Shown: positions 3,984 through 53,461 of the stretch, one piece after another
Numbering within the stretch: position 1 is the first letter of the stretch
How the letters are laid out: every line of letters starts with the position of its first letter
NCBI GenBank assembly: GCA_002269645.1
Contig: NIVC01003936.1
Location: 4,772-68,771, forward strand
DNA from: Macrostomum lignano
Taxonomy: Eukaryota
DNA: 64,000 nt
Direction: 5' to 3'
Made by a program: the position numbers and the translations under genes
The notes under the pieces: model-generated
Databases searched by the model: none
What the model was told of the DNA's origin: nothing
What the model saw: the letters and a program-made list of their open reading frames with translations, nothing else

Positions 3984-4058
3984 GTGCAGACTTGAACTAC
4001 ATAACATCTGCACGAGAGACGCGACTTCAAAACTTTGAAGAGTTTACCAATAATAGCC

Positions 4059-5858
4059 ATGGATTTCATACGCTTGTCCGTCTTGCCAACAGATCTCCTA
4101 CTTCAAGCCACCAATGAGGAATTCAAAGAGGAGCCCGAGACGACGCTTCCAGGCCGAAGGGTGTCGAATCTCAGCACAGGCTCGAACGATGATGCAACAG
4201 TTGTTCATCGGGTTTGTTCCAGCCGGTGTGTGGAGATAATGCCCCTCCTGATTAACTCCAGCTTCAAGTCTAAGTACTGGACCTTCAAGACAGTCGCCAT
4301 GCCAGACTGCTACGTATTCTCGCACAGGAGTTCGCGTTGCATTATCCTGGAAGTGGTCACCCGATTCCCGGAATCGCAGACTGAGAACCTGCACTCGTAC
4401 AAGTTTTCCGCGCACCCGTTTTTCGAGGACAAAGTGAGCACCTACACTAGGTGGAAAAGAAAGGACACTCCAAATCAAAACCTGGTTCGCTCCAGGACTT
4501 GGGATGTGGCACTGAATGTAGTGATGAAGATTGAGGCCGTGCCAGCTCCGTTTAACAAGTACCGGTACCTGCTGAAGCGTGAGTCGGAAATCCTGCAGTT
4601 TATGTGGGACAAGTACCTGGACTCTGGCGCCGACATCGATGAAATGACGGGGATTCCTATGCTCTTCGAATACCAGGAGGTGCCGAACGACACTTTCTAT
4701 GTGACAACAAGCTCCAACCAAGTCGACGAAATTGACCAGTTCGGCAAGATGAAGCCGATCAGCTTCCCGCCTGCCTCAGACCAGCGAACGACCCTGTCGT
4801 ACATGACGATGGAGAAGTTGGGGCCCAATCTCAGCTACTTGCAGCGGCTCGTCAAGGCCGCTCAAACACCGCCGTATACATTCGATTTGTGGACAGCAGC
4901 AAAGATATTCGACCAGCTCATTTGCCGCATCCTGCAGGTGCACAAGTCAGGCGTCGTGCACAATGACATCTCGCCGGAGAACATCTACATGGGAAACGGA
5001 GTCGCATTTGACGTGGTCTACCTGAACAACTACAAGCGCTCGTACATCGTGGCCGAGGGAGATAAAAAAGGTCCGTCCGGCTTGGCCTCCTCGTCCATCG
5101 GCTGCAACGTCCGGTTTGCCTCGGTAGGCCAGCTGAGTGGGTCGGTCTACAACATGAGCCCCATTGACGACATTGAGTCGGCATTCTACGTGTTGCTGGC
5201 CATGCTGAGCAGCGACTCTCTGCCTTGGGACGGCGTGCTGCGCTTAAAGCGAACTTCGGAGTATTCGCTACGGGGCGCTTCGTCCAACTCCAACGCTCGA
5301 GAGAACAACACCGTCACTGAGGAACAAAAGACGCAGATCCTGCCAACCCGAATTTCTAATGAGACTCTGAGAAAGGTGATGGATTTCAAAAATCGATTTT
5401 GGCAGTCATCTCAGCTTGTTAACCTTGTCCTGTCCAACTGTCACTGCCTGTTTTCGGGTGACGCAAAGCAGGCGTCGAGCATCGCGATGTTCATTACAGA
5501 TTTGTACCTCCGGGTGCGGGACTGGCGACAGAACTTCAAGTCCTTCGACGACTACTATCAATACTGCAAAAAGCTCAACCGCTCATCCAGCGAGGAGTTT
5601 CGCCAGTTCATGGAGCTGCGCAAATGCGCGCTAGTTTACTTCGAGTTTTCCGAAACTTTCGACATACTCAACGACATCACTTTCCGCAAAAAGGTGGACC
5701 AGCTCAAGAACGACTCGGTCACCCAGCAGCCATGGAATGCTTTCGTGTGGTGCTTCAATAATATTGAAATCACGACGCAGAGCAAGAGGTCCGTCTCGTT
5801 TGTCTCCTCGGTTGCGCAAGGCTTCCGGAGAAAGTCAGTTGCGCGCACCAGCAGGTGA
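4059..5858 (+). CDS. Intronless casein kinase 1-like protein, predicted pseudokinase (~599 aa)
   Basis: CK1-type motifs VVMKIE, LKRESEIL, GIP, MTMEKLGPNL, DQLICRILQVH, RFAS, SPIDDIES..Y, SLPW. Catalytic loop is HNDISPEN and DFG is replaced by NNY. First ATG at 4059. Confidence 0.85.
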   Translation: MDFIRLSVLPTDLLLQATNEEFKEEPETTLPGRRVSNLSTGSNDDATVVHRVCSSRCVEIMPLLINSSFKSKYWTFKTVAMPDCYVFSHRSSRCIILEVVTRFPESQTENLHSYKFSAHPFFEDKVSTYTRWKRKDTPNQNLVRSRTWDVALNVVMKIEAVPAPFNKYRYLLKRESEILQFMWDKYLDSGADIDEMTGIPMLFEYQEVPNDTFYVTTSSNQVDEIDQFGKMKPISFPPASDQRTTLSYMTMEKLGPNLSYLQRLVKAAQTPPYTFDLWTAAKIFDQLICRILQVHKSGVVHNDISPENIYMGNGVAFDVVYLNNYKRSYIVAEGDKKGPSGLASSSIGCNVRFASVGQLSGSVYNMSPIDDIESAFYVLLAMLSSDSLPWDGVLRLKRTSEYSLRGASSNSNARENNTVTEEQKTQILPTRISNETLRKVMDFKNRFWQSSQLVNLVLSNCHCLFSGDAKQASSIAMFITDLYLRVRDWRQNFKSFDDYYQYCKKLNRSSSEEFRQFMELRKCALVYFEFSETFDILNDITFRKKVDQLKNDSVTQQPWNAFVWCFNNIEITTQSKRSVSFVSSVAQGFRRKSVARTSR

Positions 5859-6876: not shown

Positions 6877-9800
6877 TCAAAGGGTGGCGTGGCACAGGGC
6901 GATCTTGTCGAAGGTCACAAATGTGCCTTGGTTCTGCTTGCTGCAATTGAGTTGAGTTTGGGTTTCAGTGCCAATCGCAAAACAGCTTAAAAAAGAAAGC
7001 AAAAAGTGGCAAATTTTCCTGCTGCCTCACCACTGGAAATACCGCCGCCCGTCGAACACTCCGTCGTGCTTCCCGGCCAGCCCGTCCGCCAGCTCCACGC
7101 CAACGTAGGTGCCCTGCCGGCCGTGCAGACTGCCGACATATCGGACGCGGCCGCGGGTCAGACGGCCCCGACTGCCGCAGAACTCAACAAGATCGCCTTG
7201 GTGGAGGTCTGACTCGCTGCGAGGCGCGAAGGTTCGCGGCTGGCGTTGCTGGTGCGCCGGTGGCGCCTGTGACAAGGACGGAGGCACCGTCGAGGACCAA
7301 ACTGGACGTCGCGGTTGCACCGGTGGCGGCAGCGGACTGGAAGCTGTCGCATCGACATCGCGATCGTCGTTCCGTCCCAGGATGTCATAGACAGCTTCAT
7401 CGACATCGTCGTCAAAGTCTGTGCGCGGTGGTCGTCGCCGGTTATTGCGCCGTCCAGGTGTCGTTCGACGAGGTTGCGGATCCTCGGCCAGTGAGGCGAC
7501 GTCGTCGCTCTCAATGTCGTCCAAATCCAGTCGGCGGCGTCGGCCAAGAGTTGATAAAGGAGGTGGTGGAGGCATCGGCGGCGGCTCCAGGATCCGGTAG
7601 CTTGGCTGTCGGTGGCCTGCGCGAATCCTCGGAGTCAGCGGCGGATCTATGGAGTTTTTATGCTTGAGTAGTTATGTATCATAGCTACACGTGGCCAGTA
7701 GAAACAAACAAATAAAATTATACAACTCCTATACAAGGTTAGGAAGCGCAATATTTACTGCAGAAAATAATTCGTTCCCTCTAACAATTAACTGCCACAG
7801 AATATACATATTCTGTGATTCACTGCTCTTAATTTACACACGGAATTAGTAGCAGAAAATCCTGGTACAGATGTAATACGATGGTCGATGTTTTAATGAG
7901 AGACACAAGCTAATGAATAAAAATATCCTTTGGGTATCATCAAAATTGGTTTAGTTACTCAAACGAGAGCTGAGTCGAGCCTGTGTCCAACATGCCCATT
8001 CGATGTTCAGCTCGACTGTACAACCCAGCCTCTCACCATAGTCGCTGCGATGAGAAGTCAGCCCGGACAGAAAGGTACGCTGCAGGTTCACTTCATCTTT
8101 GAGTCGAAGATTTTCCCGTTGAAGCTCATCGGAGCGAATTCGCGTTAGCTCCAGCTCGCGGCGCAGCTCGTCCAGCTCGACCTGCAGGTGGGCGCACTGG
8201 TCGTGGCCTCGGTGCCGCAGTCGGTTCAACTGCGGGTCATCGTGGGTGTCAGGGAAAACAGCTGAATGTTGAGAGGTGAATGACTAGCTTGTACGGGCAG
8301 AGATGCTGGTGGAGGAGGGGGCTTTTCGAAGCGCAACAGGTGGTTAACTGAATCGCATGAACCGACCAGCTGAATAGGACGAAGGGAGAACAGGGAATTG
8401 AACAGTCATTGATCAGTGAGGCCAAGCATGCAGGGTTCAGCAATCAAGCAAAGGCACCTCGTTCCGGAGCACCCGATTCTCCACCACAAGCTCGTCGACG
8501 GTGGCCTGCAGCCGTGCATCGCTTGGTGGCTCCCAGGCTGGAGGTGGGGGCGGCGGTGGTCCGCTGTAGTCGGGGTTAGCGCGCAGGCTCTGATTGGCAT
8601 CGCTCAGGTTCAGCACCTGCGCCTCCAGATCGGCTGGATGTAAGGAGCGCCGGGATGGGAAAAGAAAATTATACAAACTACGACGTAGCAAAGTAGGAGA
8701 GAATTGTTTGGGGAACTCGGTAACAGAGTAGCTACTCACCAATTCTGCGATGCAAGGCATCTGGTGAGATGAATGGCGGATCAGCTGCAGGTGGTGGCGG
8801 CGCTTCCTCTGCTGGAGGCTGCAAATAATCAGAGTCTTCGTTACTTTATACGCCTTAACTTGCACAAAATTTTGATTTTTAACTTACGTCTTCAACCGGG
8901 GGATCTTTAGAGTAGCTGGCCTTGCTTTTCCGACTGCTGCTCTTTTTGCTGCAGCTACTTCTGCTACTAGCACTGCTACTACTGCTGGTGGACTTTGCAG
9001 ATCTGTGAGAACTTAACTCTGCCTTCGCATCGACCTCATCCAACCCAGCAGACTTTTCTTGCTTGCCAAGGTTTTCACCTGCTATCTCTGCTACAATGGA
9101 TTCCTCATCAACAACTGATGGAGGCTTCGATGGCGTCTTTTGACCTTCGTCGACAACTGATGGAGGCTTGGATGACGTCTTCTGACCTTCATCTACAACT
9201 GATGGAGGCTTCGATGGCGTCTTCTGTCCTTCGTCGACAACTGATGGAGGCTTCGATGGCGTCTTCTGTCCTTCGTCGACAACTGATGGAGGCTTCGATG
9301 GCGTCTTCTGTCCTTCATCTACAACTGATGGAGGCTTCGATGGCGTCTTCTGCCCTTCGTCGACAACTGATGGAGGCTTCGATGGCGTCTTCTGTCCTTC
9401 GTCGACAACTGATGGAGGCTTGGATGGCGTCTTCTGTCCTTCGTCGACAACTGATGGAGGCTTCGATGGCATCTTCTGTCCTTCGTCGACAACTGATGAA
9501 GGCTTCGATGGCGTCTTCTGCCCTTCGTCGACAACTGATGGAGGCTTCGAAGGCGTCTTCTGACCTTCATCTACAACTGACGGTGGGTTTGATGGCGTCT
9601 TCTGTCCTTCGTCAACAACTGACGGTGGGTTTGATGGCGTCTCCTGTCCTTCGTCAACAACTGACGGTGGGTTTGATGGTGTCTTCTGTCCTTCGTCGAC
9701 AACTGATGGAGGCTTCGATGGCGTCTTCTGACCTTCATCTACAACTGACGGTGGGTTTGATGCCGTCTTCTGTCCTTCGTCAACAACTGACGGTGGGTTT

Positions 9801-10780
9801 GATGCCGTCTTCTGTCCTTCGTCGACAACTGATGGAGGCTTGGATGGCGTCTTCTGATCTCCATCTACAACTGATGGAGGCTTCGATGGCGTCTTCTGTC
9901 CTTCGTCAACAACTGACGGTGGGTTTGATGGCGTCTTCTGTCCTTCGTCGACAACTGATGGAGGCTTGGATGGCGTCTTCTGATCTCCATCTACAACTGA
10001 TGGAGGCTTCGATAATGTCTTCTGTCCTTCGTCGACAACTGATGGAGGCTTCGATGGCGTCTTCTGTCCTTCATCTACAACTGACGGTGGGTTTGATGGC
10101 GTCTTTTGACCTTCGTCGACAACTGATGGAGGCTTCGAAGGCGTCTTCTGACCTTCATCTACAACTGACGGTGGGTTTGATGGCGTCTTCTGTCCTTCGT
10201 CGACAACTGACGGTGGGTTTGATGCCGTCTTCTGTCCTTCGTCGACAACTGATGGAGGCTTGGATGGCGTCTTCTGTCCTTCGTCGACAACTGATGGAGG
10301 CTTCGATGGCATCTTCTGTCCTTCGTCGACAACTGATGAAGGCTTCGATGGCGTCTTCTGCCCTTCGTCGACAACTGATGGAGGCTTCGAAGGCGTCTTC
10401 TGACCTTCATCTACAACTGACGGTGGGTTTGATGGCGTCTTCTGTCCTTCGTCAACAACTGATGGAGGCTTCGATGGCGTCTTCTGTCCTTCATCTACAA
10501 CTGACGGTGGGTTTGATGGCGTCTTCTGTCCTTCGTCAACAACTGACGGTGGGTTTGATGGCGTCTTTTGACCTTCATCCACAAGTGATGCAGGCTTTAC
10601 AGGTGTTCTAAGGCCCTCGTCGATAGCGGACCGCTTTGGAGATATATTTTCTCGCTGGCTGTCAATGTCCGTAGCTCTACCACTAACTATGTGCAGCAGT
10701 GGTGGATCAGCTTCAATCCTGAAGTTTTCATCTTCTGAATTCTCTTGGTCTTCACCGAACTGTTGATCTTGAAAATCCAT
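6877..10780 (-). CDS. Repeat-rich coiled-coil protein with C-terminal CAP-Gly domain (6 exons, ~1006 aa)
   Basis: Exons 10780-8888, 8818-8740, 8633-8458, 8229-8037, 7646-7031, 6940-6877; all GT-AG and phase-consistent (3021 nt). CAP-Gly: GRVRYVGSLHGRQGTYVGVELADGLAGKHDGVFDGRRYFQC|KQNQGTFV. Heptad-rich exons 3-4. Confidence 0.9.
9105..10590 (-). repeat. Coding 42-bp (14-aa) tandem repeat, ~35 copies (SVVDEGQKTPS[K/N]PP)
   Basis: Direct inspection; stays in frame inside exon 1 of the CAP-Gly gene. Confidence 0.95.
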
Positions 10781-16165: not shown

Positions 16166-17278
16166 TTGACCAGACATTTGCAGGTGAGTCATTACTCACG
16201 CAAGACTAGTTTTTGTTAGCAATTTTTTTCACTATTTAAATGGAAATTTAAAAACACCATCCTAACGTACTGAATAGCTAATCTCGTAAGTTTTTCGCGC
16301 TAAATTCTCTAATTATTTGTTTACAATATTAAATTTGACAATATGAAAATACCATCCATCATAACGTAATAATGCATACTGTTGTAACTTTTCACTTGTA
16401 GTTTGTAGTCTACAAGCTTGTAGCTTATAATTTGTAACTCGGTATGAAACGTAATTAAACGGGAAGTTTTTATTACCATGTGATCTGAATGACTTAAATG
16501 CTGCAGTAACATATACCTTGTCAGTGAAGTTCGCACATACGAGCTAGATTGCTAAAATTTCAAGTAAAAAATGTCTTTCCTCAGATTCAACATTTAACTA
16601 ACGAAACATTGACTCTTTTCAAATGTTTTATCTACTTTTTATATTGGAATGTAACATGTACGTCATTTTAATTTTGGATGCAGCTTGCAATTTAGTGAGT
16701 AAGAAATGACGCATGGAGGCAGTGCATTTGTCAAGAAGACATCAAATACAGCAAATATGGAGGTGAAGAGCTGCTTGGTGCTCGGCAAGTTTGTCGTTTG
16801 CAGAGAGATGGGGCTTACGGGACTGCGATTTAGCCTAGCAACTCTGTGCTCTCCCAGCTTTGCTGAGTGGACGGAAGTTAAAGTTATTATGTGGCTTTCC
16901 AGCCTGGCAGAATGAGCATGCAGCTGATACTAGCAGTGCTGAGTCCAACTCAATCCTGATTCGCTGTCGGTGGTTGAGCGGCCAGTAACTTCCCCTGAAT
17001 AAACACTAATAGCAGGCTCCTGCCGTGTGCACCCAGTGAGTTTCTCCTGCAGTCGTTAAAAGTTCCTATTTTGCAAGAAATCGTAGAAGAGCTGAGAATT
17101 CCAGCAAGAAAAAAAATCTTGCTCTCTACGACTTGCCTGCGCAGTTGACAGCTGTCTCAGACCGAGCACGTGAAGACGTGAAGTCAATTATATACAGTAG
17201 CTCGTATTGGTTGCATTAAAGCAGCAACAGCCACACGATCGAGTAATAAAATTTCAGACAACTGTTCAGTTGATCGAA

Positions 17279-18181
17279 ATGCACCACAGAAATGCCTTGT
17301 TTGCAGCCGCAGTGCTCAGCACATGCATTTGCCTGCTCCTGACCATCGGGGGATGCGGCAACGGAGCCAAACTATTAAAGGGCGCGCAAAGTTCGACACA
17401 GATGAACCCCGCAGCCAACCAATCAAGAAGAGACGCAAGCTTGAAGGCGCAAGCACGCGCAATCAATATCATCAAAATCTTGCACCAGAGCTGGAAGACC
17501 CGCCAGCTGCCGCCCCGAGCTGTGCGATGGAGCGCCAGCTGGAAGTCCTGCTTTCCCGACTGGGAGTGGCGCCTGTGGACCGACCAGGACAACCTGGCTC
17601 TGGTGCGAGACCATTACGCCTGGTTTCTGCCGGTCTACAACGGCCAGAGGTACAACATCGAGAGGGCCGACCTGGCCAGGTATTTTTATTTGTACCATTT
17701 TGGCGGCATCTACACAGATCTGGACACGGTGTGCATGAAAAACTTCGAGCACCTGCTTCACTCGGAGACTCTCGTGTTCGGCGCCATGGACACTCACCCA
17801 GGTGACGCAGTGCTTCCTGGCCAGCTGGTGCAGAACTCCTTCATGGCCTCCCTGCGGCCGAGACACCCATTCTGGATGCGTCTTCTCAGAAGGATCGAGC
17901 GAAACTTCAAGGCTGGAAAGAGAGGTCGGCCGGAGGACAACACGGGGCCCACGGTGCTCATGGAGGAGCTGCGGCTCTACGTGCGCAGCAACGCCTCCGA
18001 CGTGAAGGTTTATCCCGGAAAGTACTTCAACCCATTCAGCTGGACGCTGAGGAACAGCAAAATCTGCAAGGACTTCGGCCAGATGTCCGACTCGGTTGAA
18101 AAGACCTGCATAAATTCCTTTCCCGAGGCATTCGTTGTACAGCTGCACACGCAGAGCTGGGGCCGGGGTCGCATGAGGTGA
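17279..18181 (+). CDS. Intronless glycosyltransferase family 32 (DXD; SUR1/OCH1-like mannosyltransferase type), type II membrane protein, ~300 aa
   Basis: Signal anchor ALFAAAVLSTCICLLLTIGG; IKILHQSWK; W...WRLWTD; RADLARY..LY.FGGIYTDLDT; HPFW; TGP motif. Confidence 0.9.
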   Translation: MHHRNALFAAAVLSTCICLLLTIGGCGNGAKLLKGAQSSTQMNPAANQSRRDASLKAQARAINIIKILHQSWKTRQLPPRAVRWSASWKSCFPDWEWRLWTDQDNLALVRDHYAWFLPVYNGQRYNIERADLARYFYLYHFGGIYTDLDTVCMKNFEHLLHSETLVFGAMDTHPGDAVLPGQLVQNSFMASLRPRHPFWMRLLRRIERNFKAGKRGRPEDNTGPTVLMEELRLYVRSNASDVKVYPGKYFNPFSWTLRNSKICKDFGQMSDSVEKTCINSFPEAFVVQLHTQSWGRGRMR

Positions 18182-19425: not shown

Positions 19426-20445
19426 ACAACAACAACAACAAAATACGCTGTCATGATGGTAAAAGTCAGCGTCACAGGGCGCGCTTCATGGCTTGGGCGC
19501 GAACAAAGGCCGCGCCACCGGCAGTGTCCGGGGCGCCGGCGTCAGCCAGCAGACAGTCGACATAACGCCGAGTTCGCGCTTGACCTCGCCGGTAGGGTGC
19601 CTGCAGCGTGAGCAGCAGCACCTCCTGCACCGGCTGTGGGCAGTACGACTCGGCGCGGATGAGATGGCCTGCGAGCTGGAGTCGCCGACGGCGCAGTAGA
19701 TCACTTGGACGTGGCAGGCCAGCGCGGCGATAGAGTGCCGAGTTGGTGACTCGCTCGACGCCGATGTTGAAGGCGGCGCGCAGCAGACCAGCGTGCGCCG
19801 CATCGACTTGCTGTTCGAGTGAGTCCGTCAGCGTCCAGGTCTCGGCGTTGTACAGCAGGACGGTCTCGATTACCGCCTGGAACAGCGCCGCCCTCTGGCG
19901 GTCCGGTAGGGCCTCGGACTGCAGGACTGCCCTCACAGAACGAAAGGCAGCCCAGGCAAGCCCGCGGCGGCGTCGCAGGTCCTCGCGAGCGTCTGGAACC
20001 AGACCGCCGAGGTAGACGAACTGCTGACATCGCGGGAGTTCGGTCGCCTGCCCGTCAGCGCCTCGGCAAAATATTGCAGCCTCGATGTCGTCCGGCACGC
20101 AGAGCACAACGGTCTTCTGCGTGTTGACCACCAGGCCGACACTCGCCGCAACGGCAACCAGCCTGTCCAGCTGCCGTTGGGCGCCCTCGACGGTCGAGGA
20201 CAGCAGGGCGAGGTCGTCGGCGTAGCCAAGCACGCTGAGCCGCTTCTCCGGTTGACGTCGACCCACGCGTCGCTGCAGCAGAAAACCGTCGTCGTCGGTA
20301 GGAAGAGCAGTCCGCAGCATCCAGTCAAGCACCAGGACGAACAGGAACGGCGCCAGCGTATCTCCCTGAAGCACACCGGAGGATGTCTCAAAGGAGTCCG
20401 ATAGGCCGTCCGGTGTTGTCACAGCAGCTGTCACAACAGCAGCTG
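19426..20445 (-). mobile_element. 5'-truncated RTE-clade non-LTR retrotransposon, copy 1
   Basis: RT motifs GVLQGDTLAPFLF, YADD, FVYLG, LLYNAETW; (TTG)n tail at 19426-19440; 9-bp TSD TTTAATGCA at 19417-19425 and 20446-20454. Confidence 0.95.
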
Positions 20446-21072: not shown

Positions 21073-22315
21073 TTCGGTTGTCAAGAAAGTTCTCGGCAAT
21101 TCTCGAAAATTCTACGGCGCGGTTTAATGGAAAGTTCTAGAAACCTGGCGCATGTGGGTATATATAGGGGGTGTGAGTGTGCATATTTTCCAGCTTTTCA
21201 CTCATCCAGCGACTATTAACATGGCAGCAAAGAGGTCACTGCAAAAATCTTCTATTCGCATTTGCTTACTGTATGACTTTAAATCCGCCCTGAGCGGCTC
21301 CGAATCCAGTCGCCGTATCAATGCTGCATTCGGCGAAGGTACCGTGTCTGTGTCAACAGCCAACGGCTGGTTTCGACGATTTCGCGCTGGCGACGAATCC
21401 ATCCAAGATCAGCCACGATCGGGTAGGCCTTCCGAAGTTGATGACGAAGAAATCGGCGCCATGGTGGAAGCTGACCCGCATCTGACAACACGTGAAATAG
21501 CGGCTACCCTTGGGGTGTCTCATACAACTATATTCAACAAACTGCGTGCCATTGGCAAGGTTTCAAAACTCGACAAGTGGCTGCCCCACCACCTCAGCAA
21601 CTTTGACCGTCAGCGGCGGGAGGAGGCGGCAACTTCATTGCTCTCGTTCCGGCGTACCACAGCTTGGCTGGAGTCGATTGTGACTGGAGATGAGAAATGG
21701 GTGCTCTACGTCAACGAGAAGCGCCGACAATCTTGGGTCTCTGAGAATCAACCACCGCAGCATCATCCGAAACCGGAGTTGCACCCGCGAAAGGTCATGC
21801 TGTCTGTATGGTGGGACATCAAAGGTATCCTGTACTATGAGCTGCTTCCTCGCAACACCACTGTCACAGCCGAGGTCTACTGCCAACAACTGCAGAAGGT
21901 GGCTGAGAAAATCGACGAACTGCGTCCAGGGCACGGCAAAGTTTGTTTACTTCACGACCACATACGGCTAAGATGACCCGCCAGAAATTGCTGCAACTGG
22001 GGTGCGAGATTCTCCCACACCCACCATATTCTCCCGACCTTGCACCATCCGATTACCACCTGTTTTCGGCCATGAGCAACAGCCTGCGCGGTCAGAGCTT
22101 TGTTGATGACAATGAAGTCAATCAATGGCTCAAAAACTTCTTCTAATCGAAGCCAGCTAGTTTCTACAGTGATGGTATCAAAAGTCTGCCAGAAAAATGG
22201 CAGAAGGTCATTGACTCAGATGGGGACTATTTTGATATTTGATGCGATTCAGCATTTAAAAAACTCGGGCTGATGGAACATTCTAGAATTGCCAGGAACT
22301 TTCTTGACAACCGAA
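21073..22315 (+). mobile_element. Full-length mariner (DD34D) transposon with disrupted transposase
   Basis: ~31-bp TIRs TTCGGTTGTCAAGAAAGTTC..., TA flanks (21071-72, 22316-17). Transposase 21221-22242 with TGDEKW, SVWW, HPPYSPDLAPSDYHLF; frameshift near 21960 (HDNARPH damaged) and TAA at ~22144. Confidence 0.95.
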
Positions 22316-25275: not shown

Positions 25276-26218
25276 CTCAAATTTCAAAATTCTAGTTGAA
25301 TTATATTATTTTAGTGCCAAATTTGAAGTGGTAAAAGACACAAATTGGAGCAACGCTATGGAGAATTTATTGATAAATTGCACTCTCAAAAGCTTTTTGC
25401 CCTTTTAGGTAGGAAGTCTTGAAAATTTTACGGTAGCTTAAGACATTGTCCGTAGTGACGATCGGGTTTAGGGTGGGGTGTAAAATTAAGCGGTTTGGTA
25501 CAGAGTTTTCATTTTATAGTTAGAGATAGATTTCAGAAGAAAAAACCCATAGACCTATTCCTATATATCCATTTAGCCCTTCAGATCGGGCTACAATTAG
25601 AAAAAACTTTTAGCATAATTCAAGCCACTGAAACACGTAAAGACAAAAGATCAACTAGCTTTACAGAAAGTTATTTGAGCAAATATTAAACTTAAGATTT
25701 TTTATTAAGAGCCGTACAAAGTGAAAAATAAAATTTTATTTTAAAACTTATTTATAACTGTGTTAAAAAAAGTAAGAATAACAATTTTTTTTCGAAATAC
25801 GATTCACTAAGTTTTTCACTTTTCAGAAAAATTCGCAACTTTGCGACGTCGCAAAATCGCAAAAAACCTGCAACTGCAGGCATGCAGTAGCAGCAGTTTA
25901 GTTAAGAAACGGTATACTTGTTTATCTGGTTCCATTCAAGTTTAGGTGCTTATTTGCTTATTAATATTATTAAGCTTGAATTTTGAAGAATTCCAACTAG
26001 GCAACAAATGAACGAGTGGCGACTGGCGACGTGGCGAGCTTAGTCAGATGTTGGATGAGCCTAGGCAGCCAAAGTAATAATATATATTATTTCTAATAAA
26101 TAGGACGAGGCCATTATAGTATTTTAATGTTTATAATTGCCAGCTGAGCATTTGCCAAATATTTTGCATTTGTTGGCTATAGTATCTACACATTCTAGTC
26201 TAGACCTATTTATTTAAG

Positions 26219-26653
26219 GCAGTTGTTATTGTTACGGTGACCATATAAATAGCGAGAGGGTTATTTTTACAGTTAACACTTAAAACAAATATCATCTAAA
26301 TGAAGTGACAAACTTGCTGTGCAAATACTATGATAGACGTGATGGTTAAATTTAAAAAATAAAGAATTATTTTATTAATAAATACAATGGTAGGCCTAAC
26401 TTCTAGTGGTTCTTGTCATGGTAGCTTACTGTAGGTAATTGTTAATTATTGCCTTGTAATTTAACAGAAATTTCTTCCACATGACCATAAAAATAGCCAT
26501 TTTGCTTCCTACCTATGGTGACCATAAAAATAACAGTTTTGTTTTTTATATGGTTACATTAGTAAAGACCATAGGCCTGGATAGTGTCTTATGCATTAAT
26601 GGTAAAAATAACCATTTTGTTATTTATATGGTCACCATAACAATAACAACTGC
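26219..26653. mobile_element. AT-rich ~435-bp MITE-like element with ~65-bp imperfect TIRs
   Basis: GCAGTTGTTATTGTTACGGTGACCATATAAATA... is inverted at 26585-26653; no TSD recognised. Confidence 0.7.
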
Positions 26654-26707
26654 TAGAATAGTTTTGGTTCCAGTATTTTTTAATTAGAAAAATTATAAAT
26701 ATATAAA

Positions 26708-28716
26708 TAGGGACTCCAGTGAGGTTACCGTAAAGCTGATAATTACACGAAAAATCGTAAAATAATGTTTTTTTAAAAATGAAATTGCCATGCATAGAAA
26801 ATGTTTATAGTAAAAACAAAATATACATGTTAAAGAAGAGTTTCTATTCTTTTTAATGAGATAAAGAAACAAAAAATATATACATTGTATGCCGAGTAAT
26901 GTCCCACTGAACTTCGTCTTTTTTTTAATACACTCGTTTTGTTGCCAAAAAAAGTGACTTTCGAAAGTTCGTTTTTTTGTTGGAAAGCAATTATTTTAAC
27001 AAAATATAACTATTTATTGATACAAACAACTATATTTACAAACATTTTTTGACATTTTGAGCAGAAATTTTTTTTCTTTTCTCCCCATTTAGACAGTATA
27101 AAAAAATTAAAGTTGAATAAAAATCGTACCCGCATTTCCGAAGCTTAGTAAAACCCGGAAATGAATGCTACTCCGTAATATGATTACATTAAAAAAAACC
27201 GCACATGTCTATCTACATCCGCCAAAAAGTTATTGAAGCCTGTTTTTTGCCTATCTCTTCAGTGTAAAATAGACGGATAAAACAGAAAATTTAAATTTTT
27301 TTCTAGCAGTAATTTCCGAAGACTATTCTTCTACTGCATTTAATAGAGGAACTTATAGGAATTCTTCACAGCACTTTTATATCTTTCCACATACATCCGC
27401 CGAGGAGCAGCAGCAATGTTTGCTTTTTAGTAGCGATACTACTTACATACTACTTATATAAAAAGTGGCTTATTATGGCTTTTCTTCACCAAAAAGAAGA
27501 CGTTTTACCATTGCAAATTAGTTTTGAAGGCAAAATAATACAAATAAATGTATGCTTTAGCTTATTGAGCTATAGCAATTGCAATCCCAATAAATGACCC
27601 CTTGAATGCACGTAACCTTGGTCTGCAATTCAAACTCCCATAAAAATGAACTGAATTTCATAAGAAATTGTGTTTTTTCCATTTGTAAGTTTAATAAGCA
27701 ACTTCACAATATACAATTTTAAGTACAATATATTTTTAAATACTTCTTTACACTTGTTTACAGAAATGTTCATTGGTAACTTTATTCACAATATACAATT
27801 TTACAATAAGGATAGGCTCAATCAAAAAATATACAAGACAATAGTATCAACAATTATTTACCTATATATGTTTTACAGTTAAAAAGCAAAGCAGACAATA
27901 TACATTATGTGTGTAAAGACAATAAGCATTAAATATATGCTAACTTCAGTCTTCAGTTGCAGCTACTCAACAAGCAATAATATTGGAAAAAAAAGAACAA
28001 GAGCTTTTAAATAAACCAAAGTACACAAAAAAAACATTTTCATATGTTTTTCATTAAAAAAACAAATCAAACTTTATATATATTCATTAGTCTAAAAAAT
28101 ATAATCATTCAAAGTTGAAAAATGTGCAATTTTAAGATATGCTATCAAGTTCCAGTAGCAAAAAAGTCACAAAATTGGTGAATTTTTTAACCTTTGTCAA
28201 TATATAGGAAAAATTGGTATAAAAATATATACTTTTGTATGTTGTGGAGTAAACAAATAAAAAAGATTTCAGAAAAAGCAATTAACTTTTAAATAATAGT
28301 CATTTGAAAATTTAATTTTGCTCTATTTTTGATATGCATTTTTCACTTTTAAAAAATTCAAATGCAAACCCCAAGAAAGATACATTAGAAAGAATAAAAA
28401 CAATTTGTTAATCTTATGTAGAACTGCTTGGTCTTTAAAATGATACCAGACTCAATATTGTATGTTGAATAGCAAAAAAGATATGACAACAAAAAGTGAA
28501 AAATTTTGTTTTCGTACATCTAATGGCAACAATCTATAATGTATTTTTCCTATCTAAAAAACGTAATTTTTTGGGCACAAAAAATGCTATAACTTTTTTA
28601 TTACTCAACTAAATTTAATAAGTGAAGCCATTTTGTGATGCTGTTATTGTCCTCTATCAGATACATATCTGAAAATATATAAATTTTAAAGTTTCAAAAT
28701 CTCACTGGAGTCCCTA
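26708..28716. mobile_element. ~2-kb AT-rich non-autonomous TIR element (TAGGG termini, hAT-like)
   Basis: Perfect 16-bp TIR TAGGGACTCCAGTGAG / CTCACTGGAGTCCCTA; ATATAAA on both flanks; no long ORF. Confidence 0.75.
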
Positions 28717-30194
28717 ATATAAATATATAATTTGCATTTCATTGCGTAAGTCTTCTTGCGTAAGGCAAGAAATAAAGAAATGTGAGGGGTTGTTTAGTTT
28801 GATTTAGATTTAGAATTTTTGGCTAGACTATGTAGCTCAGGCTTTTTGACTAGACTAGAGTTTGGACATGAAGCTAGCTAGAGCTAGAGTGAAGAAGAGA
28901 AGGGTGATTTACTAATGTACATTGGCGCTTTGTTTGTGTCCAACTTTCTCTACACCTGCTCTTATTGGACAAGCCATTTCTCCCCCTTTTAACCAAATCC
29001 CACGACCTTAGCTATGCCAACAACCCCATGAGCCAAGCCATGCCAACAACCCCATAGTTAAAACTGATATAGGAATTACAGAGTGAAAGCCATGGAGAGG
29101 GGGTTGAATGTTTTAACACAAAAATCAATTTGCAGGCCACTTTTACATTGTTAGATATGACACTCATAGTAAGAGTGCTGCGGGCCAGATCTTTCCTGCA
29201 GGCCGGAGTTTGCCAACCCCTACTGTAAAGTATATAATAGGCCTAATGCAATCAAACATATTGTAAAAGAATGTGCATTACATTATCTCAGTCTATGAGC
29301 TGCAATATTTTAAATTATTTTTTATATGTGATTCAGTTATAACTTAATGAGGTGCTATTTTCAACTTCTGTGTCCCATATTTAGGTCTTATTTAGACCTA
29401 AAATAAAGATCACCCAAGATTTCAAAGATCTTCAAAAAGATGTACCATTTTTGACTTCCAGTCTTAAAACAGTGATTACAGGGAGGGTGGTATAGTGGCA
29501 ACCCCATTTGGATAACCTAACCGTATTTCTTTGCCTAACCAAAGAAGCCTATATCCTTGGTTGGTAGAATAGTGTTGTAAATCTATTGTTATTGGTAGAA
29601 TATAAATTTTAAATATGGTATAAGGCTTGATATATATGCATTCAATCTAATATACCTATCTATGCATTGACCTCATTCTAATTTAATAAATGAGCATAAA
29701 GCAACATGTTATAATTAGATAAACAGATGCTAAAATTATGCTAATAAACAATATTTAATATCATTTTTTGATATACTGATATCTTTAATTGAAGTTCTCA
29801 AACTATACACTGCAAATTCTACTTCAAGTAATTACTAAAACGGTTAGACTGGCACTTTGAGCTAGTTTTAATTTTAAAAAAGAAATTACCAATTTATAAA
29901 CTTCGATAGATACCATACTTAATCTTTTAAATCTATAAGTTCCATAGCTTCAACTATATTTCTACTATAATTTTATTCACATATTTATTTTTTGATGTCG
30001 TTTGAAGTGGCTTCAACGCCCTAGCACCTGACATTGAATATGTCGTTAAGTGAGTTCTAGTTTTCCTTCTGCCCCATAATGTACTGCTAGCTCTGCTGCT
30101 TGCTAAGATTTTGTATTGCTGTTTTAGAAATTGTCTGAGGTCATTTAATAGTTCTTTGTGCGAATCAAAGTTTTGTGCTTCACTTAGAATCGCT

Positions 30195-31085
30195 TTCAAT
30201 CTGACCCTGAGACTCACCTTCAACCTGATCCTGAGAATCAGTCTCAACCTGACCCCGAGAATCTCCCTCAACCTGACCCCGAGAATCTCCCTCAACCTGA
30301 CCCCGAGAATCTCCCTCAACCTGACTCTGAGAATCGGTCTCAACTTGACCCCGAGAATCTCCCTCAACCTGACCCCGAGAATCTCCCTCAACCTGACCCC
30401 GAGAATCTCCCTCAACCTGACCCTGAGAATCTCCCTCAACCTGACCCCGAGAATCTCCCTCAACCTGACCCCGAGAATCTCCCTCAACCTGACCCCGAGA
30501 ATCTCCCTCAACCTGACCCTGAGAATCGGTCTCAACTTGACCCCGAGAATCTCCCTCAACCTGACCCTGAGAATCGGTCTCAACTTGACCCCGAGAATCT
30601 CCCTCAACCTGACCCCGAGAATCTCCCTCAACCTGACCCTGAGAATCGGTCTCAACTTGACCCCGAGAATCTCCCTCAACCTGACCCCGAGAATCTCCCT
30701 CAACCTGACCCCGAGAATCTCCCTCAACCTGACCCTGAGAATCGGTCTCAACTTGACCCCGAGAATCTCCCTCAACCTGACCCCGAGAATCTCCCTCAAC
30801 CTGACCCCGAGAATCTCTCTCAACCTGACCCCGAGAATCTCCCTCAACCTGACTCTGAGAATCGGTCTCAACTTGACCCCGAGAATCTCCCTCAACCTGA
30901 CCCCGAGAATCTCCCTCAACCTGACCCCGAGAATCTCCCTCAACCTGACCCTGAGAATCTCCCTCAACCTGACCCCGAGAATCTCCCTCAACCTCACCCC
31001 GAGAATCCCCCTCAACTGACCCCGAGAATCCCCCTCAACCTGACCCCGAGAATCTTCCTCAACCTGACCCCGAGAATCTCCGCCA
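30195..31085. repeat. 24-bp minisatellite, ~37 copies, ending ~15 nt before the GW182 splice acceptor
   Basis: Unit AACCTGACCCCGAGAATCTCCCTC with interspersed variant AACCTGACCCTGAGAATCGGTCTC. Confidence 0.95.
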
Positions 31086-31101
31086 ACCCTCTCTCCGCCA
31101 G

Positions 31102-34100
31102 GAAACGGAGCCGACAACGGCAACAGCGGCGGCAACGGCGGCTCCGGCGGCGGCTTCGGCAGCAGCAGCGTGTGGGCGCCAACCAGCGTCTCTGGCAGCG
31201 GCTGGAACTCCGAAGTGACCACCTCAGCGGCCGGCTCTTCCACCGGAGCCGATGCGGCCAGCCTGAAGGCGGGCGATGAGCCCGGCAAGGACGCCTGGCC
31301 GCAGCTGGACGGCGCCGCGGTCATCACCACGGCATCGATCGTCGACTCCGCCAATTCAACAGCTGACTCTTCTCAGCAGCAGCCGAGGTCCGCTGGCGGT
31401 GGAAGCGCCTGGGGCGGGGGAGTCGGCGACTCAGCCGGCGGCGGCTGGGATGCCACTAGCGCGGTATCGCCAACCTCAGACACGGCCAAGTCAGTTGGCG
31501 GGGCGATGGCTTCTTCTTCGACTGCGCCGCCGCCGCCGCTGTCCTCACAGGCGGGCGTCTGGTCCTCGGCGGGGCTCGGCGGCGCCGCGTCCATCTGGGG
31601 CACCGGGCCGCAGGCCGGAGACTCCGCCGCAGCTTCTGTGTCGTCGCCGACCACGCCAGCTGGCTCCATGGAGGCGGCCTGGATGTCCGGCGCCGGCTGG
31701 AAGCCCGCCGCTGTCCCGGGGCCCGCCGGCGCTCCGGCTGATGACTTCGGCAACCTGCAGCAGCAGCTCGGCCAGCAGCAGCAGCTTCCACAGCCGCCGG
31801 CCGCTTCTGGCGGGCCAGCCATGCCTGACGATCCGTCGGCTTCGGGCGGCGGCCAGGTTTTCGATGCCATCGTGAACAGCAACGATGGCTGGGGCAGCCG
31901 GCCGATCAACCAGACGACTCCCTGGGACCTCGGTGCCAGCGACGCGGCCGCGGCCACCGCCTCGATGAGGCCCGGCGAGAGCCTGGTGTGGAACCAGGAG
32001 CCCAACAACGGAACGGCTATCTGGGAGACGTACTACGAGAGCCGCGGCGAGCGGCCCGGCCGCTGGGATCGCGGCCAGCAGCAGCCGCCGCCTTCCAGCA
32101 TGGACGCCTTCCAGACTGGCGGACAGCCGCCCTGGACCGGCGGCTGGAACAGCGCCGAGGCGGACGAGCCGTGGTCGGGGCTGGGCGGTCACCAGGGCGT
32201 GCCGCCCATGATGCCGCACCCCAAGATGCACCAGCAGCCGCATCACCAGCAGCCGCCACCGCTGTCGGGCGGGCAGCCGCACAGCAAGCCGGAGATGCGG
32301 GCCACCCTCATCAGGCAGCTAGTGGAGTACGGGTTCAGCAGGGAGGAGGCCACCCAGGCTCTCATCAACAACAACATGAGTCTGGAGGGCGCCATGAACG
32401 AATTGCGGGCCGGCCTCGGTGGCGGTGGTGGCGGCGGAAGCCACCCGCACCAGCAGCGAGCTGCCGCTGCCGTTGCCGCCGCCGCTGCAGCCGCTGCCGC
32501 TGGCGGCTACCCTCCAAGCGGCGGAGGCGGCGGCGGCAGTGGTCGCGGTGGGGCTCCGCCGCCCCAAATGCGAGATCAAATCATGCGGCAGCTGCAGGCC
32601 GTGGTGCACCGCGGCATGATGGTGGGGCCGCCGCCGCTTCAGCAACAACAGCAGCAGCAGCAGCAGCAGATGGCGCCAGCAGTGCAGCAGGATGCCAAGC
32701 TAATGCAGCAGCAGCTCATGGTTGGCCAGAACCAGCTGAACCTGCTGACCAACCAGCAGCAGAAGCTGGTAGCAGCGATGCGACAGCAGGGCCAGATGAG
32801 CCCCATGTACGCTCAGCACGCCAGCCAGCTTCAGGAGCTGGTGGTCAAGTCCAACCAGCTCAAAACCAACATGCACCAGATCACCCAGCAGCTGCGCGCC
32901 ATGGAGCTCGGCGGTGGCGGAGGCGCCAGCGGACCCGACGGGCGCGCACTCGCTCCCGGCATGCCTCCGATGGGCCAGCAGCAGCAACAGCCGCCGCCTG
33001 CGCCGCCGCAGTCGCAGTCCCGCTTTGAGGCCTGGAGCGGCGGGCTGCGTGGGGACGAGCAGCGGGCGCCCGGCCAGCAGCAGCAGTCGCAGCTGCATGC
33101 CAGCCTGTCCAACCCCAACCTGATGGGCGGCCCGCACCCAGCCTTCCACCGGTCCATGTCGGAGATTGCGCCAGGAGGCGGCGCGAATCGGGGCGCCGGC
33201 GCCGGCGGAATTCCCGGCGTCATGGACGGCATCCCGGAGTTCGTGCCGGGCCAGCCGTGGGCTGGTGGCGTGGCCGGAGTCGGTGAGCTGTGGGCTCGCT
33301 GATATGACTACTTGGAGTAGATGGAGCTAAATCGGGAGTCCACGAGCGTATATTTAGATAACATATTCGCTTTTTAACTAGTGTGATCCACTCTCCCTTG
33401 GCTGCTGACCCATCTCACTTTTCACATTTCCCACTAGCTCCTGACTCATCTCTTTCTGGCTCCTGACCCATTTCCCTTTGGCTCCTAACCCATCTCTTCC
33501 AGGCTTCTGACCCATTTCCCACTGGCTTCCGACCCATTTCCCATTTCTGACCCATTGACCCATTTCCACTAGCTCCCGACCCATCTGTTCCTGGCTCCTG
33601 ACCCATTTCCCACTAGCTCCTGACCCATCTCTCCCTGGCTCCTGACCCATTTCCCTTTGGCTCCTAACCCATCTCTTCCAGGCTTCTGACCCATTTCCCA
33701 TTTCTGACCCATTGACCCATTTCCACTAGCTCCTGACCCATCTCTCCCTGGCTCCTGTCCCATTTCCCACTGGCTCCTAACCCATCTCTTCCTGGCTTCT
33801 GACCAATTTCCGACTGGTTTCTGACCCATTTCCCATTTCTGACCCATTGAGGCATTTCCACTAGCTCCTGACCCATCTCTCCCTGGCTCCTGTCCCATTT
33901 CCCACTGGCTCCTAACCCATCTCTTCCTGGCTTCTGACCAATTTCCGACTGGTTTCTGACTCATTTCCCATTTCTGACCCATTGACCCATTTCCCACCGG
34001 CTTCTGACCCATTTCCCATTTCCCATTGGCTTCTGACCCATTTCCCACCGGCTTCTGACCCATTTTCCATTTCCCCATTTTCCATTTCCCATTGGCTTCT

Positions 34101-39549: not shown

Positions 39550-41275
39550 CGCCGACGAGCTGGAGTCGCCGACGGCGCAGTAGATCACTTGGACGTGGCA
39601 GGCCAGCGCGGCGATAGAGTGCCGCGTTGGTGACTCGCTCGACGCCGATGTTGAAGGCGGCGCGCAGCAGACCAGCGTGCGCCGCATCGACTTGCTGTTC
39701 GAGTGAGTCCGTCAGCGTCCAGGTCTCAGCGTTGTACAGCAGGACGGTCTCGATTACCGCCTGGAACAGCGCCGCCCTCTGGCGGTCCGGTAGGGCCTCG
39801 GACTGCAGGACTGCCCTCACAGAACGAAAGGCAGCCCAGGCAAGCCCGCGGCGGCGTCGCAGGTCCTCGCGAGCGTCTGGAACCAGACCGCCGAGGTAGA
39901 CGAACTGCTGACATCGCGGGAGTTCGGTCGCCTGCCCGTCAGCGCCTCGGCAAAATATTGCAGCCTCGATGTCGTCCGGCACGCAGAGCACAACGGTCTT
40001 CTGCGTGTTGACCACCAGGCCGACACTCGCCGCAACGGCAACCAGCCTGTCCAGCTGCCGTTGGGCGCCCTCGACGGTCGAGGACAGCAGGGCGAGGTCG
40101 TCGGCGTAGCCAAGCACGCTGAGCCGCTTCTCCGGTTGACGTCGACCCACGCGTCGCTGCAGCAGAAAACCGTCGTCGTCGGTAGGAAGAGCAGTCCGCA
40201 GCACCCAGTCAAGCACCAGGACGAACAGAAACGGCGCCAGCGTATCTCCCTGAAGCACTCCGGAGGATGTCTCAAAGGAGTCCGATAGGCCGTCCGGTGT
40301 TGTCACAGCAGCTGTCGTATCACGGTACATCGCCATGACGGCGGAGATCAGCTGCTCAGGCACGTTGTACGCGCGGAGCACCATTGGAAGCACGGCTCTG
40401 ACAACCGAGTCGAATGCCTTCTTGAAATCAATAAAGATTAGAATCAGGATCGACTGACGAATCCGCGCCTCCTCGATGACTCAGCGAAGAGCCAGGATCT
40501 GCGCCACTGTGCCGCGATGGGGCCGGAACCCGTTCTGCTCTGGGCGCAGGTACGGATCCAGCACGGGCTGCAACCGCGAAAGCAGCATCCGGTTGAACAG
40601 CTTCGCTGCACAGGACTGAAGGCAGATGCCTCGATGGTCTTCAAGCCTAGTGGTGCCCGGCTTCTTTGGAACAGCGACGATGTGCGCCGTGGTCCATTCG
40701 TTGGGCGCCGCCTCACCGAAGAGCACGCGGTTCATCACTCTGGCGACCTCAGCGGCCACACAGGGGATGCGCAGCGCCTCGATGGGCACCTCGTCCGGAC
40801 CCAGCGCTTTCCCGCCCGGTGACTGCTGGGCGAGCTTGACAACGTCGGCTGCGTTGACTGGGGCTACGCTGAAACTCTCCTCTGCCGGCAGCGGCGTCTC
40901 CGGCGGCAGCGTCAGACTGTCTGGCAGCGGGGGTGGCGGCGCGTTGACGATGGCGGCGAAGAACTCGCGCAGCTCGTTCCTACGCTCGTCCGGCGTGTCA
41001 CCAGCCAGGTTCAGCGGATTGCGCCGCTTTCGTCCCGTCAGAGCGTTGATGGCGGACCAGGCCACGCGCCCTCTGGCATCGGGCCCAGCGGCAGAGACAG
41101 CCTGAATGGCGTCATCGACAGCCGCTTGTTGGCGCTGCAGGTAGACAGCTGCCAGAGCTGCCTCTGCCTCGCGGGTTGGTCGCCTGCTCAAGCGGAGCTT
41201 CTCCAGATCTTCCCTCGCTGCCTGAATCGCGGGGTCGTCCTGCCAGACCGGCTGCCCACGTTGAGCCGGCTGCAT
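39550..41275 (-). mobile_element. RTE LINE fragment, copy 3 (longest; RT domain nearly complete)
   Basis: K(A)LGPD, DHRGICL, EQNGFR, DFKKAFDS, QGD, YADD; in-frame TGA at 40481; near-identical to copy 1; 3' end replaced by an unrelated CAGTGGTGTAGCC/GC-run sequence (~39452-39545). Confidence 0.95.
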
Positions 41276-41431
41276 CATCGGGACTATCATCGGGACTACT
41301 ATATACACTTTAAACTTAAGTGTATATCAAAAGCTATAAAAAGCTTTAGCATATTTTATATACTATAATGCAAATCTTTACTAGTACTAGGAAATAAAAG
41401 ATATTAACTTTAGATTTTACTTTCATTTCAG

Positions 41432-53461
<12,030 letters not shown>

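Follow-up and report, generated by a model that had tools for sequence, protein, structure and literature searches.

A 64,000-nucleotide stretch of the Macrostomum lignano genome (GenBank assembly GCA_002269645.1, contig NIVC01003936.1, positions 4,772 to 68,771 of the forward strand; hereafter the window) carries on its minus strand a gene in which a long run of 14-residue repeats is joined to a coiled coil and a C-terminal CAP-Gly domain. The question raised by this locus is whether such a protein stands alone, as a preliminary description had it in calling the architecture novel, or whether it is a variant of something older. The gene is real and coding and fits no named CAP-Gly family, so that much of the description stands; what does not is the novelty of the whole, since the coiled coil and C-terminal GKHDG CAP-Gly domain are conserved elsewhere. 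Its C-terminal half is that of a conserved family without a name, and the architecture is therefore a variant, not a singular case. Judged from sequence comparison, novelty is confined to the repeat run, the coiled coil and CAP-Gly half is that of an old, unnamed animal family, and the gene is a divergent, repeat-expanded member of this existing but uncharacterized family, which extends from Cnidaria to reptiles.

The coding span (6877–10780, minus strand) consists of six exons separated by five GT/AG introns of 69, 106, 228, 390 and 90 nt, and encodes 1006 amino acids (aa) and a stop codon without internal stops; its stop codon and ATG coincide exactly with the limits given in the preliminary description. 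Exon 1 (8888–10780), whose array lies in a 633-aa minus-strand open reading frame (ORF; 8879–10780), encodes the ATG, an acidic N-terminus, the array, an acidic segment and a Ser-rich linker, and ends at the donor GAC/GTAAGT (the slash marks the junction). Exon 2 (8740–8818) encodes a Pro-rich spacer and the start of the first of three conserved motifs (DPPFISPDALHRRI), and exon 3 (8458–8633) the remainder of motif 1 (ADLEAQVLNLSDANQSL), a poly-Pro insert and the start of motif 2 (VENRVLRNE). The rest of motif 2 (LNRLR) and motif 3 (LDELRRELELTRIRSDELQRENLRLKDEV), with the main predicted helix, lie in exon 4 (8037–8229), followed in exon 5 (7031–7646) by a disordered Pro/Arg-rich linker (aa 783–921) and most of the CAP-Gly domain (7031–7236, from RTFAPRS), and in exon 6 (6877–6940) by the last CAP-Gly strands (CKQNQGTFVTFDKIALCHATL) and the TGA stop; all six exons are on the minus strand. 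An in-frame TAG immediately precedes the ATG, and no minus-strand ORF of at least 60 aa occurs upstream of the ATG up to 12500. The sequence at the gene start (...ttccgattag/ATG) is acceptor-like and could serve for spliced-leader addition; trans-splicing affects 38.8% of M. lignano genes (PMC5730564).

Two M. lignano models in UniProt, A0A1I8J356 and A0A1I8HXW2, share four of the five exon junctions exactly. Furthermore, junctions 2/3, 3/4 and 5/6 are independently supported, because motifs conserved in distant orthologues are restored only across them. A0A1I8HXW2 uses an alternative GT donor within exon 1 (9077–9078, minus strand) that joins ...EIA to exon 3 in frame; checked by hand, the resulting 1702 nt end in phase 1, the phase in which exon 3 is entered in the gene model. 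With this donor, about 90 aa comprising the basic Ser-rich linker and exon 2 would be lost, and the array and the CAP-Gly domain would be kept. A0A1I8J356 joins SVVDE to AEEAPPPP, also in frame and also without the Ser-rich linker. Since both models skip the linker in frame, it may be dispensable, as may the first Pro-rich spacer, and the link between array and CAP-Gly domain is supported by three different models. When the non-repeat part was searched against 5.8 billion clusters, only three matches were returned, all from M. lignano (73–91% identity), with UniProt M. lignano proteins at 90–91%. A0A1I8J356 is 97.4% identical to the gene model over 383 aa, which fits the block duplications described for this genome (PMC5730564).

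The terminal domain is a CAP-Gly domain, as the preliminary description had supposed. Pfam PF01302 matches it with E=4.4e-18 (65.4 bits; cut-off 26.5) over residues 390–444 of the 452-aa non-repeat part, which correspond to aa 944–998 of the 1006-aa model, and the domain as a whole spans aa 918–1006. In Foldseek, all 35 PDB matches at E<=0.001 are CAP-Gly domains, most at about 2 Å root-mean-square deviation. Compared with solved domains, the sequence scores 40 bits with DCTN1, 39 with CLIP-115, 38 with KIF13B, 38 with TBCB, 32 with CEP350, 31 with CYLD and 23 with TBCE, and is thus equidistant from all named families with solved structures. With CAP_GLY the only Pfam domain above cut-off in the model, and with 23–40 bits against solved domains, the gene is not a plain orthologue of a known CAP-Gly protein. 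The peptide-binding loop, recognized from sequence and alignments, reads GKHDG (7060–7074, minus strand), a motif that TBCE also carries. The Lys and Asp of GKNDG are thus kept and the Asn is replaced by His, and the position of p150Glued Trp57 is Tyr in the whole unnamed family. The N-to-H change in the loop is reported to be conservative and to leave binding of EE[Y/F] peptides unaffected (PMC3806363).

The family emerged from an exhaustive HMMER search with A0A1I8J356 against 1.84 billion representatives, in which the 1971 matches were re-analyzed locally. Ordinary CAP-Gly proteins match over the domain only, with at most 53 bits. About 60 representatives have a CAP-Gly match of 60–91 bits, with the domain at the extreme C-terminus in nearly all, and the 55–60 bit bin of best-domain scores between these and other CAP-Gly matches is empty. 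At least 16 family members also match the coiled-coil region (query 80–225) in phmmer, the best (E=1.6e-10) being from Mytilus. A MAFFT alignment resolves this region into the three motifs: D/NPxxPxALxRKIxDLxSQVxDLQEANE family-wide and DPPFISPDALHRRIADLEAQVLNLSDANQ here; AENxxLxxxI family-wide and VENRVLRNELNRL here; and LRxDxRxLRERNxxLxEENxRLKEE family-wide and LRRELELTRIRSDELQRENLRLKDE here. The family CAP-Gly signature is RPFAPR...GHLPGR..YLGVELD..GKHDG..RYFxCKPNKGVFVxFNKVxMAW, and 21 invariant alignment columns of the domain are common to the gene and the family.

The gene shares the features that define these proteins. It has a single CAP-Gly domain ending within about 8 residues of the C-terminus, as do the other members, and this domain carries the family signature and is closer in similarity to the family than to other CAP-Gly domains, despite RTFAPR, LHGR and KQNQGTFV at three places. 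The three-motif coiled coil lies upstream of it, with a poly-Pro insert replacing part of the first segment, and the N-terminus is Ser-rich and of low complexity (Ser 12–16% and the commonest residue in most members examined, 16% here). Together, the three coiled-coil motifs, the RPFAPR lead-in, GKHDG, a terminal tail of the RYFxCKPNKGVFVxFxK type and a Ser-rich disordered N-terminus are what the family has in common. Within it, the Macrostomum gene is the most divergent member seen, with 41–47% CAP-Gly identity and KQNQGTFV for KPNKGVFV; it differs furthermore in the poly-Pro insert and in the array of 35 units of 14 aa, which occurs in this gene alone.

Look-ups of 30 members placed the family in Nematostella (Cnidaria), bivalves, gastropods, a cephalopod, the brachiopod Lingula and the nemerteans Lineus and Tubulanus, and among deuterostomes in the crinoid Antedon, the amphioxus Branchiostoma, the elephant shark Callorhinchus, six frogs and the lizard Anolis. 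Examples are Nematostella A7T153, Lingula LOC106169666, Mytilus A0A8B6E8N6, Branchiostoma A0A8J9VKE5, Callorhinchus LOC103186410 and Anolis LOC132771751. A profile search with the CAP-Gly tail alignment added members from Saccoglossus and Capitella; most of its matches were fragments the size of single short exons, and none had a telling name. No mammalian, insect or nematode member was among the 30 looked up, an absence that was not rigorously tested. To our knowledge, no such protein belongs to the human CAP-Gly set (CLIP1–4, DCTN1, KIF13B, CEP350, TBCB, TBCE, CYLD). Members are labeled "uncharacterized" or carry automatic names, such as "CLIP2" (Branchiostoma A0A8J9VKE5) or "dentin sialophosphoprotein-like". 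In the searchable literature we found no description of the family and no published function for any member, and the only C-terminal CAP-Gly domains described there are those of KIF13B/Khc-73 and TBCB. M. lignano itself also has a canonical family paralogue (A0A1I8FCT9 / A0A1I8IZN2), which lacks the array.

Family members do not share a conserved N-terminal region, and its length ranges from 84 to 1206 aa. Two bivalve orthologues carry tandem repeats of their own there, at a position equivalent to that of the Macrostomum array: a 13-aa unit (DRRTPLDGSLHGS) in about 8 copies at aa ~313–429 of the Mytilus protein (P0021) and a 13-aa unit (GSPAPASYHGSAT) in about 12 copies at aa ~780–935 of the Argopecten protein (P0042), each unit with one S/T-P. 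Because Mytilus and Argopecten have these separate arrays, N-terminal repeat expansion is recurrent in the family.

None of the named CAP-Gly proteins has this layout. TBCB resembles it in having a coiled coil followed by a C-terminal CAP-Gly domain, and TBCB structures are the top Foldseek matches, but TBCB is about 245 aa long with an N-terminal ubiquitin-like domain and an EEY-like tail, whereas the protein here has 1006 aa, no ubiquitin-like domain (Pfam) and ends in CHATL. CLIP-170 and p150Glued are coiled-coil dimers whose CAP-Gly domains are flanked by Ser-rich or basic, phospho-regulated segments, and they give the best sequence matches among solved domains (39–40 bits); their CAP-Gly domains, however, are N-terminal, so that the polarity is opposite. 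CLIP-170 and CLIP-115 have two N-terminal CAP-Gly domains, a long coiled coil and C-terminal zinc knuckles or an ETF tail, in contrast to one CAP-Gly, no zinc knuckle (Pfam) and a CHATL end here, and the p150 domain of dynactin p150Glued was not found by Pfam in our C-terminal CAP-Gly protein. KIF13B/Khc-73 combines an N-terminal kinesin-3 motor and FHA domain with a CAP-Gly domain near the C-terminus, whereas Pfam finds no motor domain here. Likewise, the leucine-rich repeats and ubiquitin-like domain of TBCE and the ubiquitin-specific protease domain and three CAP-Gly domains of CYLD were not found by Pfam in our model, nor was the layout of CEP350 (a centrosomal protein of >3000 aa with an internal CAP-Gly), and the scores with these three are 23–32 bits. 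The term neurofilament-like, used in the preliminary description, holds for composition alone: like the KSP side-arms of neurofilament-H/M and the projection domain of MAP2/tau, the protein has a long, disordered Pro/Lys/Ser/Glu-rich region with repeated [S/T]P next to a cytoskeleton-binding module, and the spacer role proposed below is the same. This is an analogy only: the protein has neither an intermediate-filament rod (Pfam) nor a tau repeat, its array carries a net negative charge, and [ST]P does not exceed what composition predicts.

What had been noted from the raw sequence is confirmed throughout. Tandem Repeats Finder reports a 42-bp period at 9111–10597 with 35.4 copies, 88% matches, 0% indels and a score of 2141, and parsing of the minus-strand frame yields exactly 35 units of 14 aa, from 10588 to 9119 (consensus SVVDEGQKTPSKPP; 21 distinct DNA units), followed by a partial unit 36, SVVDEE; about 35 had been estimated. 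Fifteen of the 35 units are identical to the consensus, 12 have N in place of the second (+3) K, and 7 have lost TP. The motif counts (19 TPSK, 9 TPSN, 1 SPKR and 1 TPVK) bear out the earlier tally of about 19 TPSK plus SPKR and TPVK, and [ST]Px[KR] sites number 21 in exon 1 and 22 in the whole gene model. A recurring unit pair, KPS / SVVDEGQKM, said to lie about 20 units apart, is found in units 6–7 and again in units 26–27. In the DNA, a 237-bp exact block (both copies minus strand) is present at 10226–10462 (units 4–8 and part of unit 9) and at 9386–9622, 840 bp or 20 units downstream in the gene; 20 units is also the offset with the lowest mean mismatch in the array. Within the window, matches to the 42-mer consensus are confined to the array, with 0 expected by chance. 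A search with exon 1 against the 5.8 billion clusters matched two M. lignano entries alone, and nowhere outside M. lignano was this 14-aa array found. Because exon 1 matches M. lignano only and the canonical paralogue lacks the array, the array is a lineage-specific expansion in a divergent paralogue. The same repeat unit is retained in the homeologous copy A0A1I8J356.

Charge divides the N-terminal half of the protein into distinct blocks, all on the minus strand. The unique N-terminus (aa 1–64, 10589–10780), which holds SPKR and TPVK, has a net charge of −8; the array (aa 65–554, 9119–10588) is 20% Pro with a net charge of −14; and partial unit 36 with the acidic segment (aa 555–590, 9011–9118) has a net charge of −7. 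These are followed by the Ser-rich basic linker (aa 591–625, 8906–9010), with 54% Ser and a net charge of +9. This linker, the Pro-rich spacers (aa 626–650, aa 679–701 and a PPPMPPPPP stretch in the linker) and the heptads had all been seen earlier. AlphaFold predicts helices carrying the conserved heptad-rich motifs at model aa ~649–675, 695–722 and 727–774, with the poly-Pro insert between the first two. In an AlphaFold2 run on A0A1I8J356 with a 26-sequence alignment, the predicted local distance difference test score is about 90 for the CAP-Gly domain, 70–90 for the three helices, and it falls below 50 across both the repeats and the Pro- and Arg-rich linker (aa 783–921; RRRR, GRRNNRRRPPR). 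The model contains no SxIP-type end-binding (EB) protein motif save one weak SPLP, neither an EEY/F tail nor a KEN box, and only one match resembling a destruction box.

The account that we favor, with moderate confidence, is that the protein is a dimeric CAP-Gly microtubule anchor with a disordered, acidic projection domain, in which an ancient C-terminal module is joined to a lineage-specific N-terminal half. The C-terminal ~360 aa are a divergent copy of a eumetazoan module made up of a coiled coil of about 130 aa, a basic Pro-rich disordered linker and the terminal CAP-Gly domain. The N-terminal ~650 aa, comprising the acidic head, the 35 units of SVVDEGQKTPSKPP and the Ser-rich basic linker, are lineage-specific, the array having arisen by unequal crossing-over that included a recent 5-unit segmental duplication. 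The ~1006-aa protein would be cytoplasmic, with the coiled coil forming a parallel dimer, and the paired CAP-Gly domains could then dock on EEY/F-type tails such as those of alpha-tubulin and EB-type proteins, probably assisted by the Arg-rich linker. The Pro-rich, net-acidic array would be unable to bind the acidic microtubule surface and would project outward as a spacer or docking platform, much as the projection domain of MAP2/tau does. A projection role is suggested by the net charge of −14 and 20% Pro, unlike the basic microtubule-binding repeats of classical microtubule-associated proteins; binding of the array to microtubules in the manner of those basic proteins is ruled out by its charge. 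KTPSK fits the S/T-P-x-K consensus of cyclin-dependent kinases, and proline-directed phosphorylation there, if it occurs, would add negative charge to the array and extend it further.

Such a role presupposes that the array is translated, a point that matters because the window is full of minisatellites (dozens) and the genome is rich in repeats, simple and tandem repeats making up 15% of it (PMC5730564). These same facts, together with the array being open in two frames, are what could be said for an ordinary non-coding minisatellite, open by chance and wrongly joined to a neighboring CAP-Gly gene, which we consider very improbable. In the SVVDEGQ frame alone, 102 of the 118 non-consensus bases of the array fall at codon position 3, giving 90 synonymous against 28 non-synonymous changes, with K/N and P/A the only common non-synonymous variants. 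Nei-Gojobori proportions of synonymous (pS) and non-synonymous (pN) differences among units are 0.34 and 0.043 (pN/pS 0.13), where the units are not independent and variants have spread by unequal crossing-over. Five other minisatellites of the window with periods of 3n, used as controls, have no comparable codon-position bias (p=0.046–0.96, against 2.9e-33 for the array). The third-position bias, the pN/pS ratio and the unbiased controls argue that the array is translated in the SVVDEGQ frame and that its peptide is under purifying selection. In addition, there are zero indels over 35 units, and the frame runs from the ATG via non-repeat sequence to the consensus GTAAGT donor, which is in phase with the next exon. 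Exon 2 lacks a Met of its own, all orthologues have long N-terminal regions, and two independent database models also link the repeat to the CAP-Gly domain. A long plus-strand ORF across the array (8995–10611) was ruled out as coding, with 6 synonymous against 112 non-synonymous changes. Translation by itself would be compatible with an array that has no sequence-specific role, a recent disordered insertion that is merely tolerated while function resides in the coiled coil and CAP-Gly domain. We regard this as rather unlikely, even though the N-terminal region is unconserved in the family and varies from 84 to 1206 aa, the M. lignano paralogue does without the array, [ST]P is not enriched and the genome is prone to tandem expansion (PMC5730564). 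Units differ at ~34% of synonymous but only ~4% of non-synonymous sites, and therefore the array is not of very recent origin and its peptide has been preserved; in the homeologous copy A0A1I8J356 the unit is the same, and the bivalve orthologues have independently evolved arrays at the same place.

Other functions for either half must also be weighed against projection from a microtubule anchor. The array could serve as a multivalent docking platform, its 35 Pro-rich ligands (KTPSKPP / PxxP) concentrating partners such as SH3 or WW domains, Pin1, Cks or proline-directed kinases on microtubules. The model contains 44 PxxP and 22 [ST]Px[KR] matches, nearly all of them in the array, and purifying selection acts on the whole 14-mer and not on composition alone; yet the array is not known to have a partner, its motif is both short and degenerate, and the many copies amount to the one amplified observation on which the phospho-repeat idea also rests, and we consider this use of the array doubtful. 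Equally doubtful, in our judgment, is that the family CAP-Gly domain, instead of reading tubulin or EB tails, binds poly-Pro stretches of the same protein or, like the CAP-Gly domains of CYLD, a different ligand. Several poly-Pro runs are available in the protein, CYLD CAP-Gly3 is among the structural neighbors, the Phe52-aligned position is Gly (see below) and the position aligned with Arg90 of p150Glued is not basic. However, conservation extends to GK[H]DG, the Trp-to-Tyr position, RYF and GxFV, and the best sequence matches among solved structures are the p150Glued and CLIP CAP-Gly domains, whose complexes with tail peptides have been solved. The exchange of Asn for His is, moreover, reported to be harmless for EE[Y/F] binding (PMC3806363).

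Several observations weigh against the favored account of a dimeric anchor with a projecting, possibly phosphorylated array. Composition-preserving shuffles of the N-terminal 648 aa predict 23.8 +/- 4.0 [ST]P, and 30 are present (z=1.5); the +3 Lys is missing from one third of the array units. With the array collapsed to one unit there is no excess at all (3 observed, 3.6 expected). The 19 TPSK copies are one amplified motif and therefore not 19 independent observations; within the family, bivalves and Tubulanus show an enrichment of [ST]P (z=3–5.7) that deuterostomes and the M. lignano paralogue do not. Phosphorylation of the array is thus plausible, supported by no statistic here. The first coiled-coil segment is broken by a poly-Pro insert that orthologues lack. 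Phe52 of p150Glued is part of an aromatic pocket, and the position aligned with it, in the LPGR stretch, is Gly both here and family-wide; because of this, tail binding may differ from that of CLIP or p150. At the level of the gene, the exon 1/2 junction is not fixed, A0A1I8J356 and A0A1I8HXW2 using other junctions that skip the Ser-rich linker, and the exact duplication at 840 bp may have arisen in the assembly process.

As readers of microtubule and tubulin tails, CAP-Gly proteins form a small group that has been studied in depth, and the locus points to a further, animal-wide family, which is itself a more interesting result than the array. Taken alone, the array is of modest interest, being a lineage-specific coding minisatellite in a genome with 15% simple and tandem repeats. 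A bolder proposal, which we offer as speculation and think unlikely, is that these proteins constitute an eleventh, unnamed CAP-Gly family, reaching from cnidarians to reptiles and apparently missing from mammals, whose recurrent S/T-P arrays would act as phosphorylation-tunable, microtubule-anchored brushes that space, for example, the microtubules of flatworm sperm or cilia. The full array, the linker-skipping isoform, the homeologous copy and the array-free paralogue form a natural length series for a test of microtubule spacing. M. lignano is amenable to RNA interference. Because it also supports transgenesis (PMC5730564), it is a practical animal in which to establish a first function for the family.

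The remainder of the window contains further elements of note. Convergent to the CAP-Gly gene, and ending about 1 kb from its stop codon, a single 607-aa ORF (4035–5858, plus strand) has a weak protein-kinase match below threshold (E=0.0098; 15.7 bits, cut-off 31.7) and a catalytic-loop-like HNDISPEN without the usual Arg and Lys; it may encode a pseudokinase. A 39-bp repeat in 11 copies (1793–2224, 95% matches) is open on both strands (ORFs 1742–2257, minus, and 1769–2305, plus), with no Pfam match and no codon-position bias. The region 42000–64000 is very dense in minisatellites, with a strong GC skew and 3n-period arrays that lack codon-position bias; examples are 14 bp x 70 (44270–45247), 22 bp x 31 (51488–52174) and 15 bp x 98 (62409–63926). 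Composition switches abruptly within 26001–34000, from about 4 kb at 30% GC to 4 kb at 62–64% GC, the GC-rich part holding a 24-bp x 37 minisatellite open on both strands (30196–31088) and a 710-aa ORF with a weak UBA-like match (31170–33302). Two 320-aa ORFs with reverse-transcriptase fragments (19472–20434 and 39431–40393, minus strand) are separated by 19,884 bp and share 99% identity over 300 nt, as copies of one retroelement or a segmental duplication would be, and a further reverse-transcriptase fragment lies at 40481–41308. Finally, an ORF at 17207–18181 (plus strand) contains a DXD-motif glycosyltransferase sugar-binding region (PF04488, E=1e-17), and one at 21152–21976 (plus strand) encodes a mariner/Mos1-type transposase with HTH_48 and Transposase_1 domains (E=1.4e-31).

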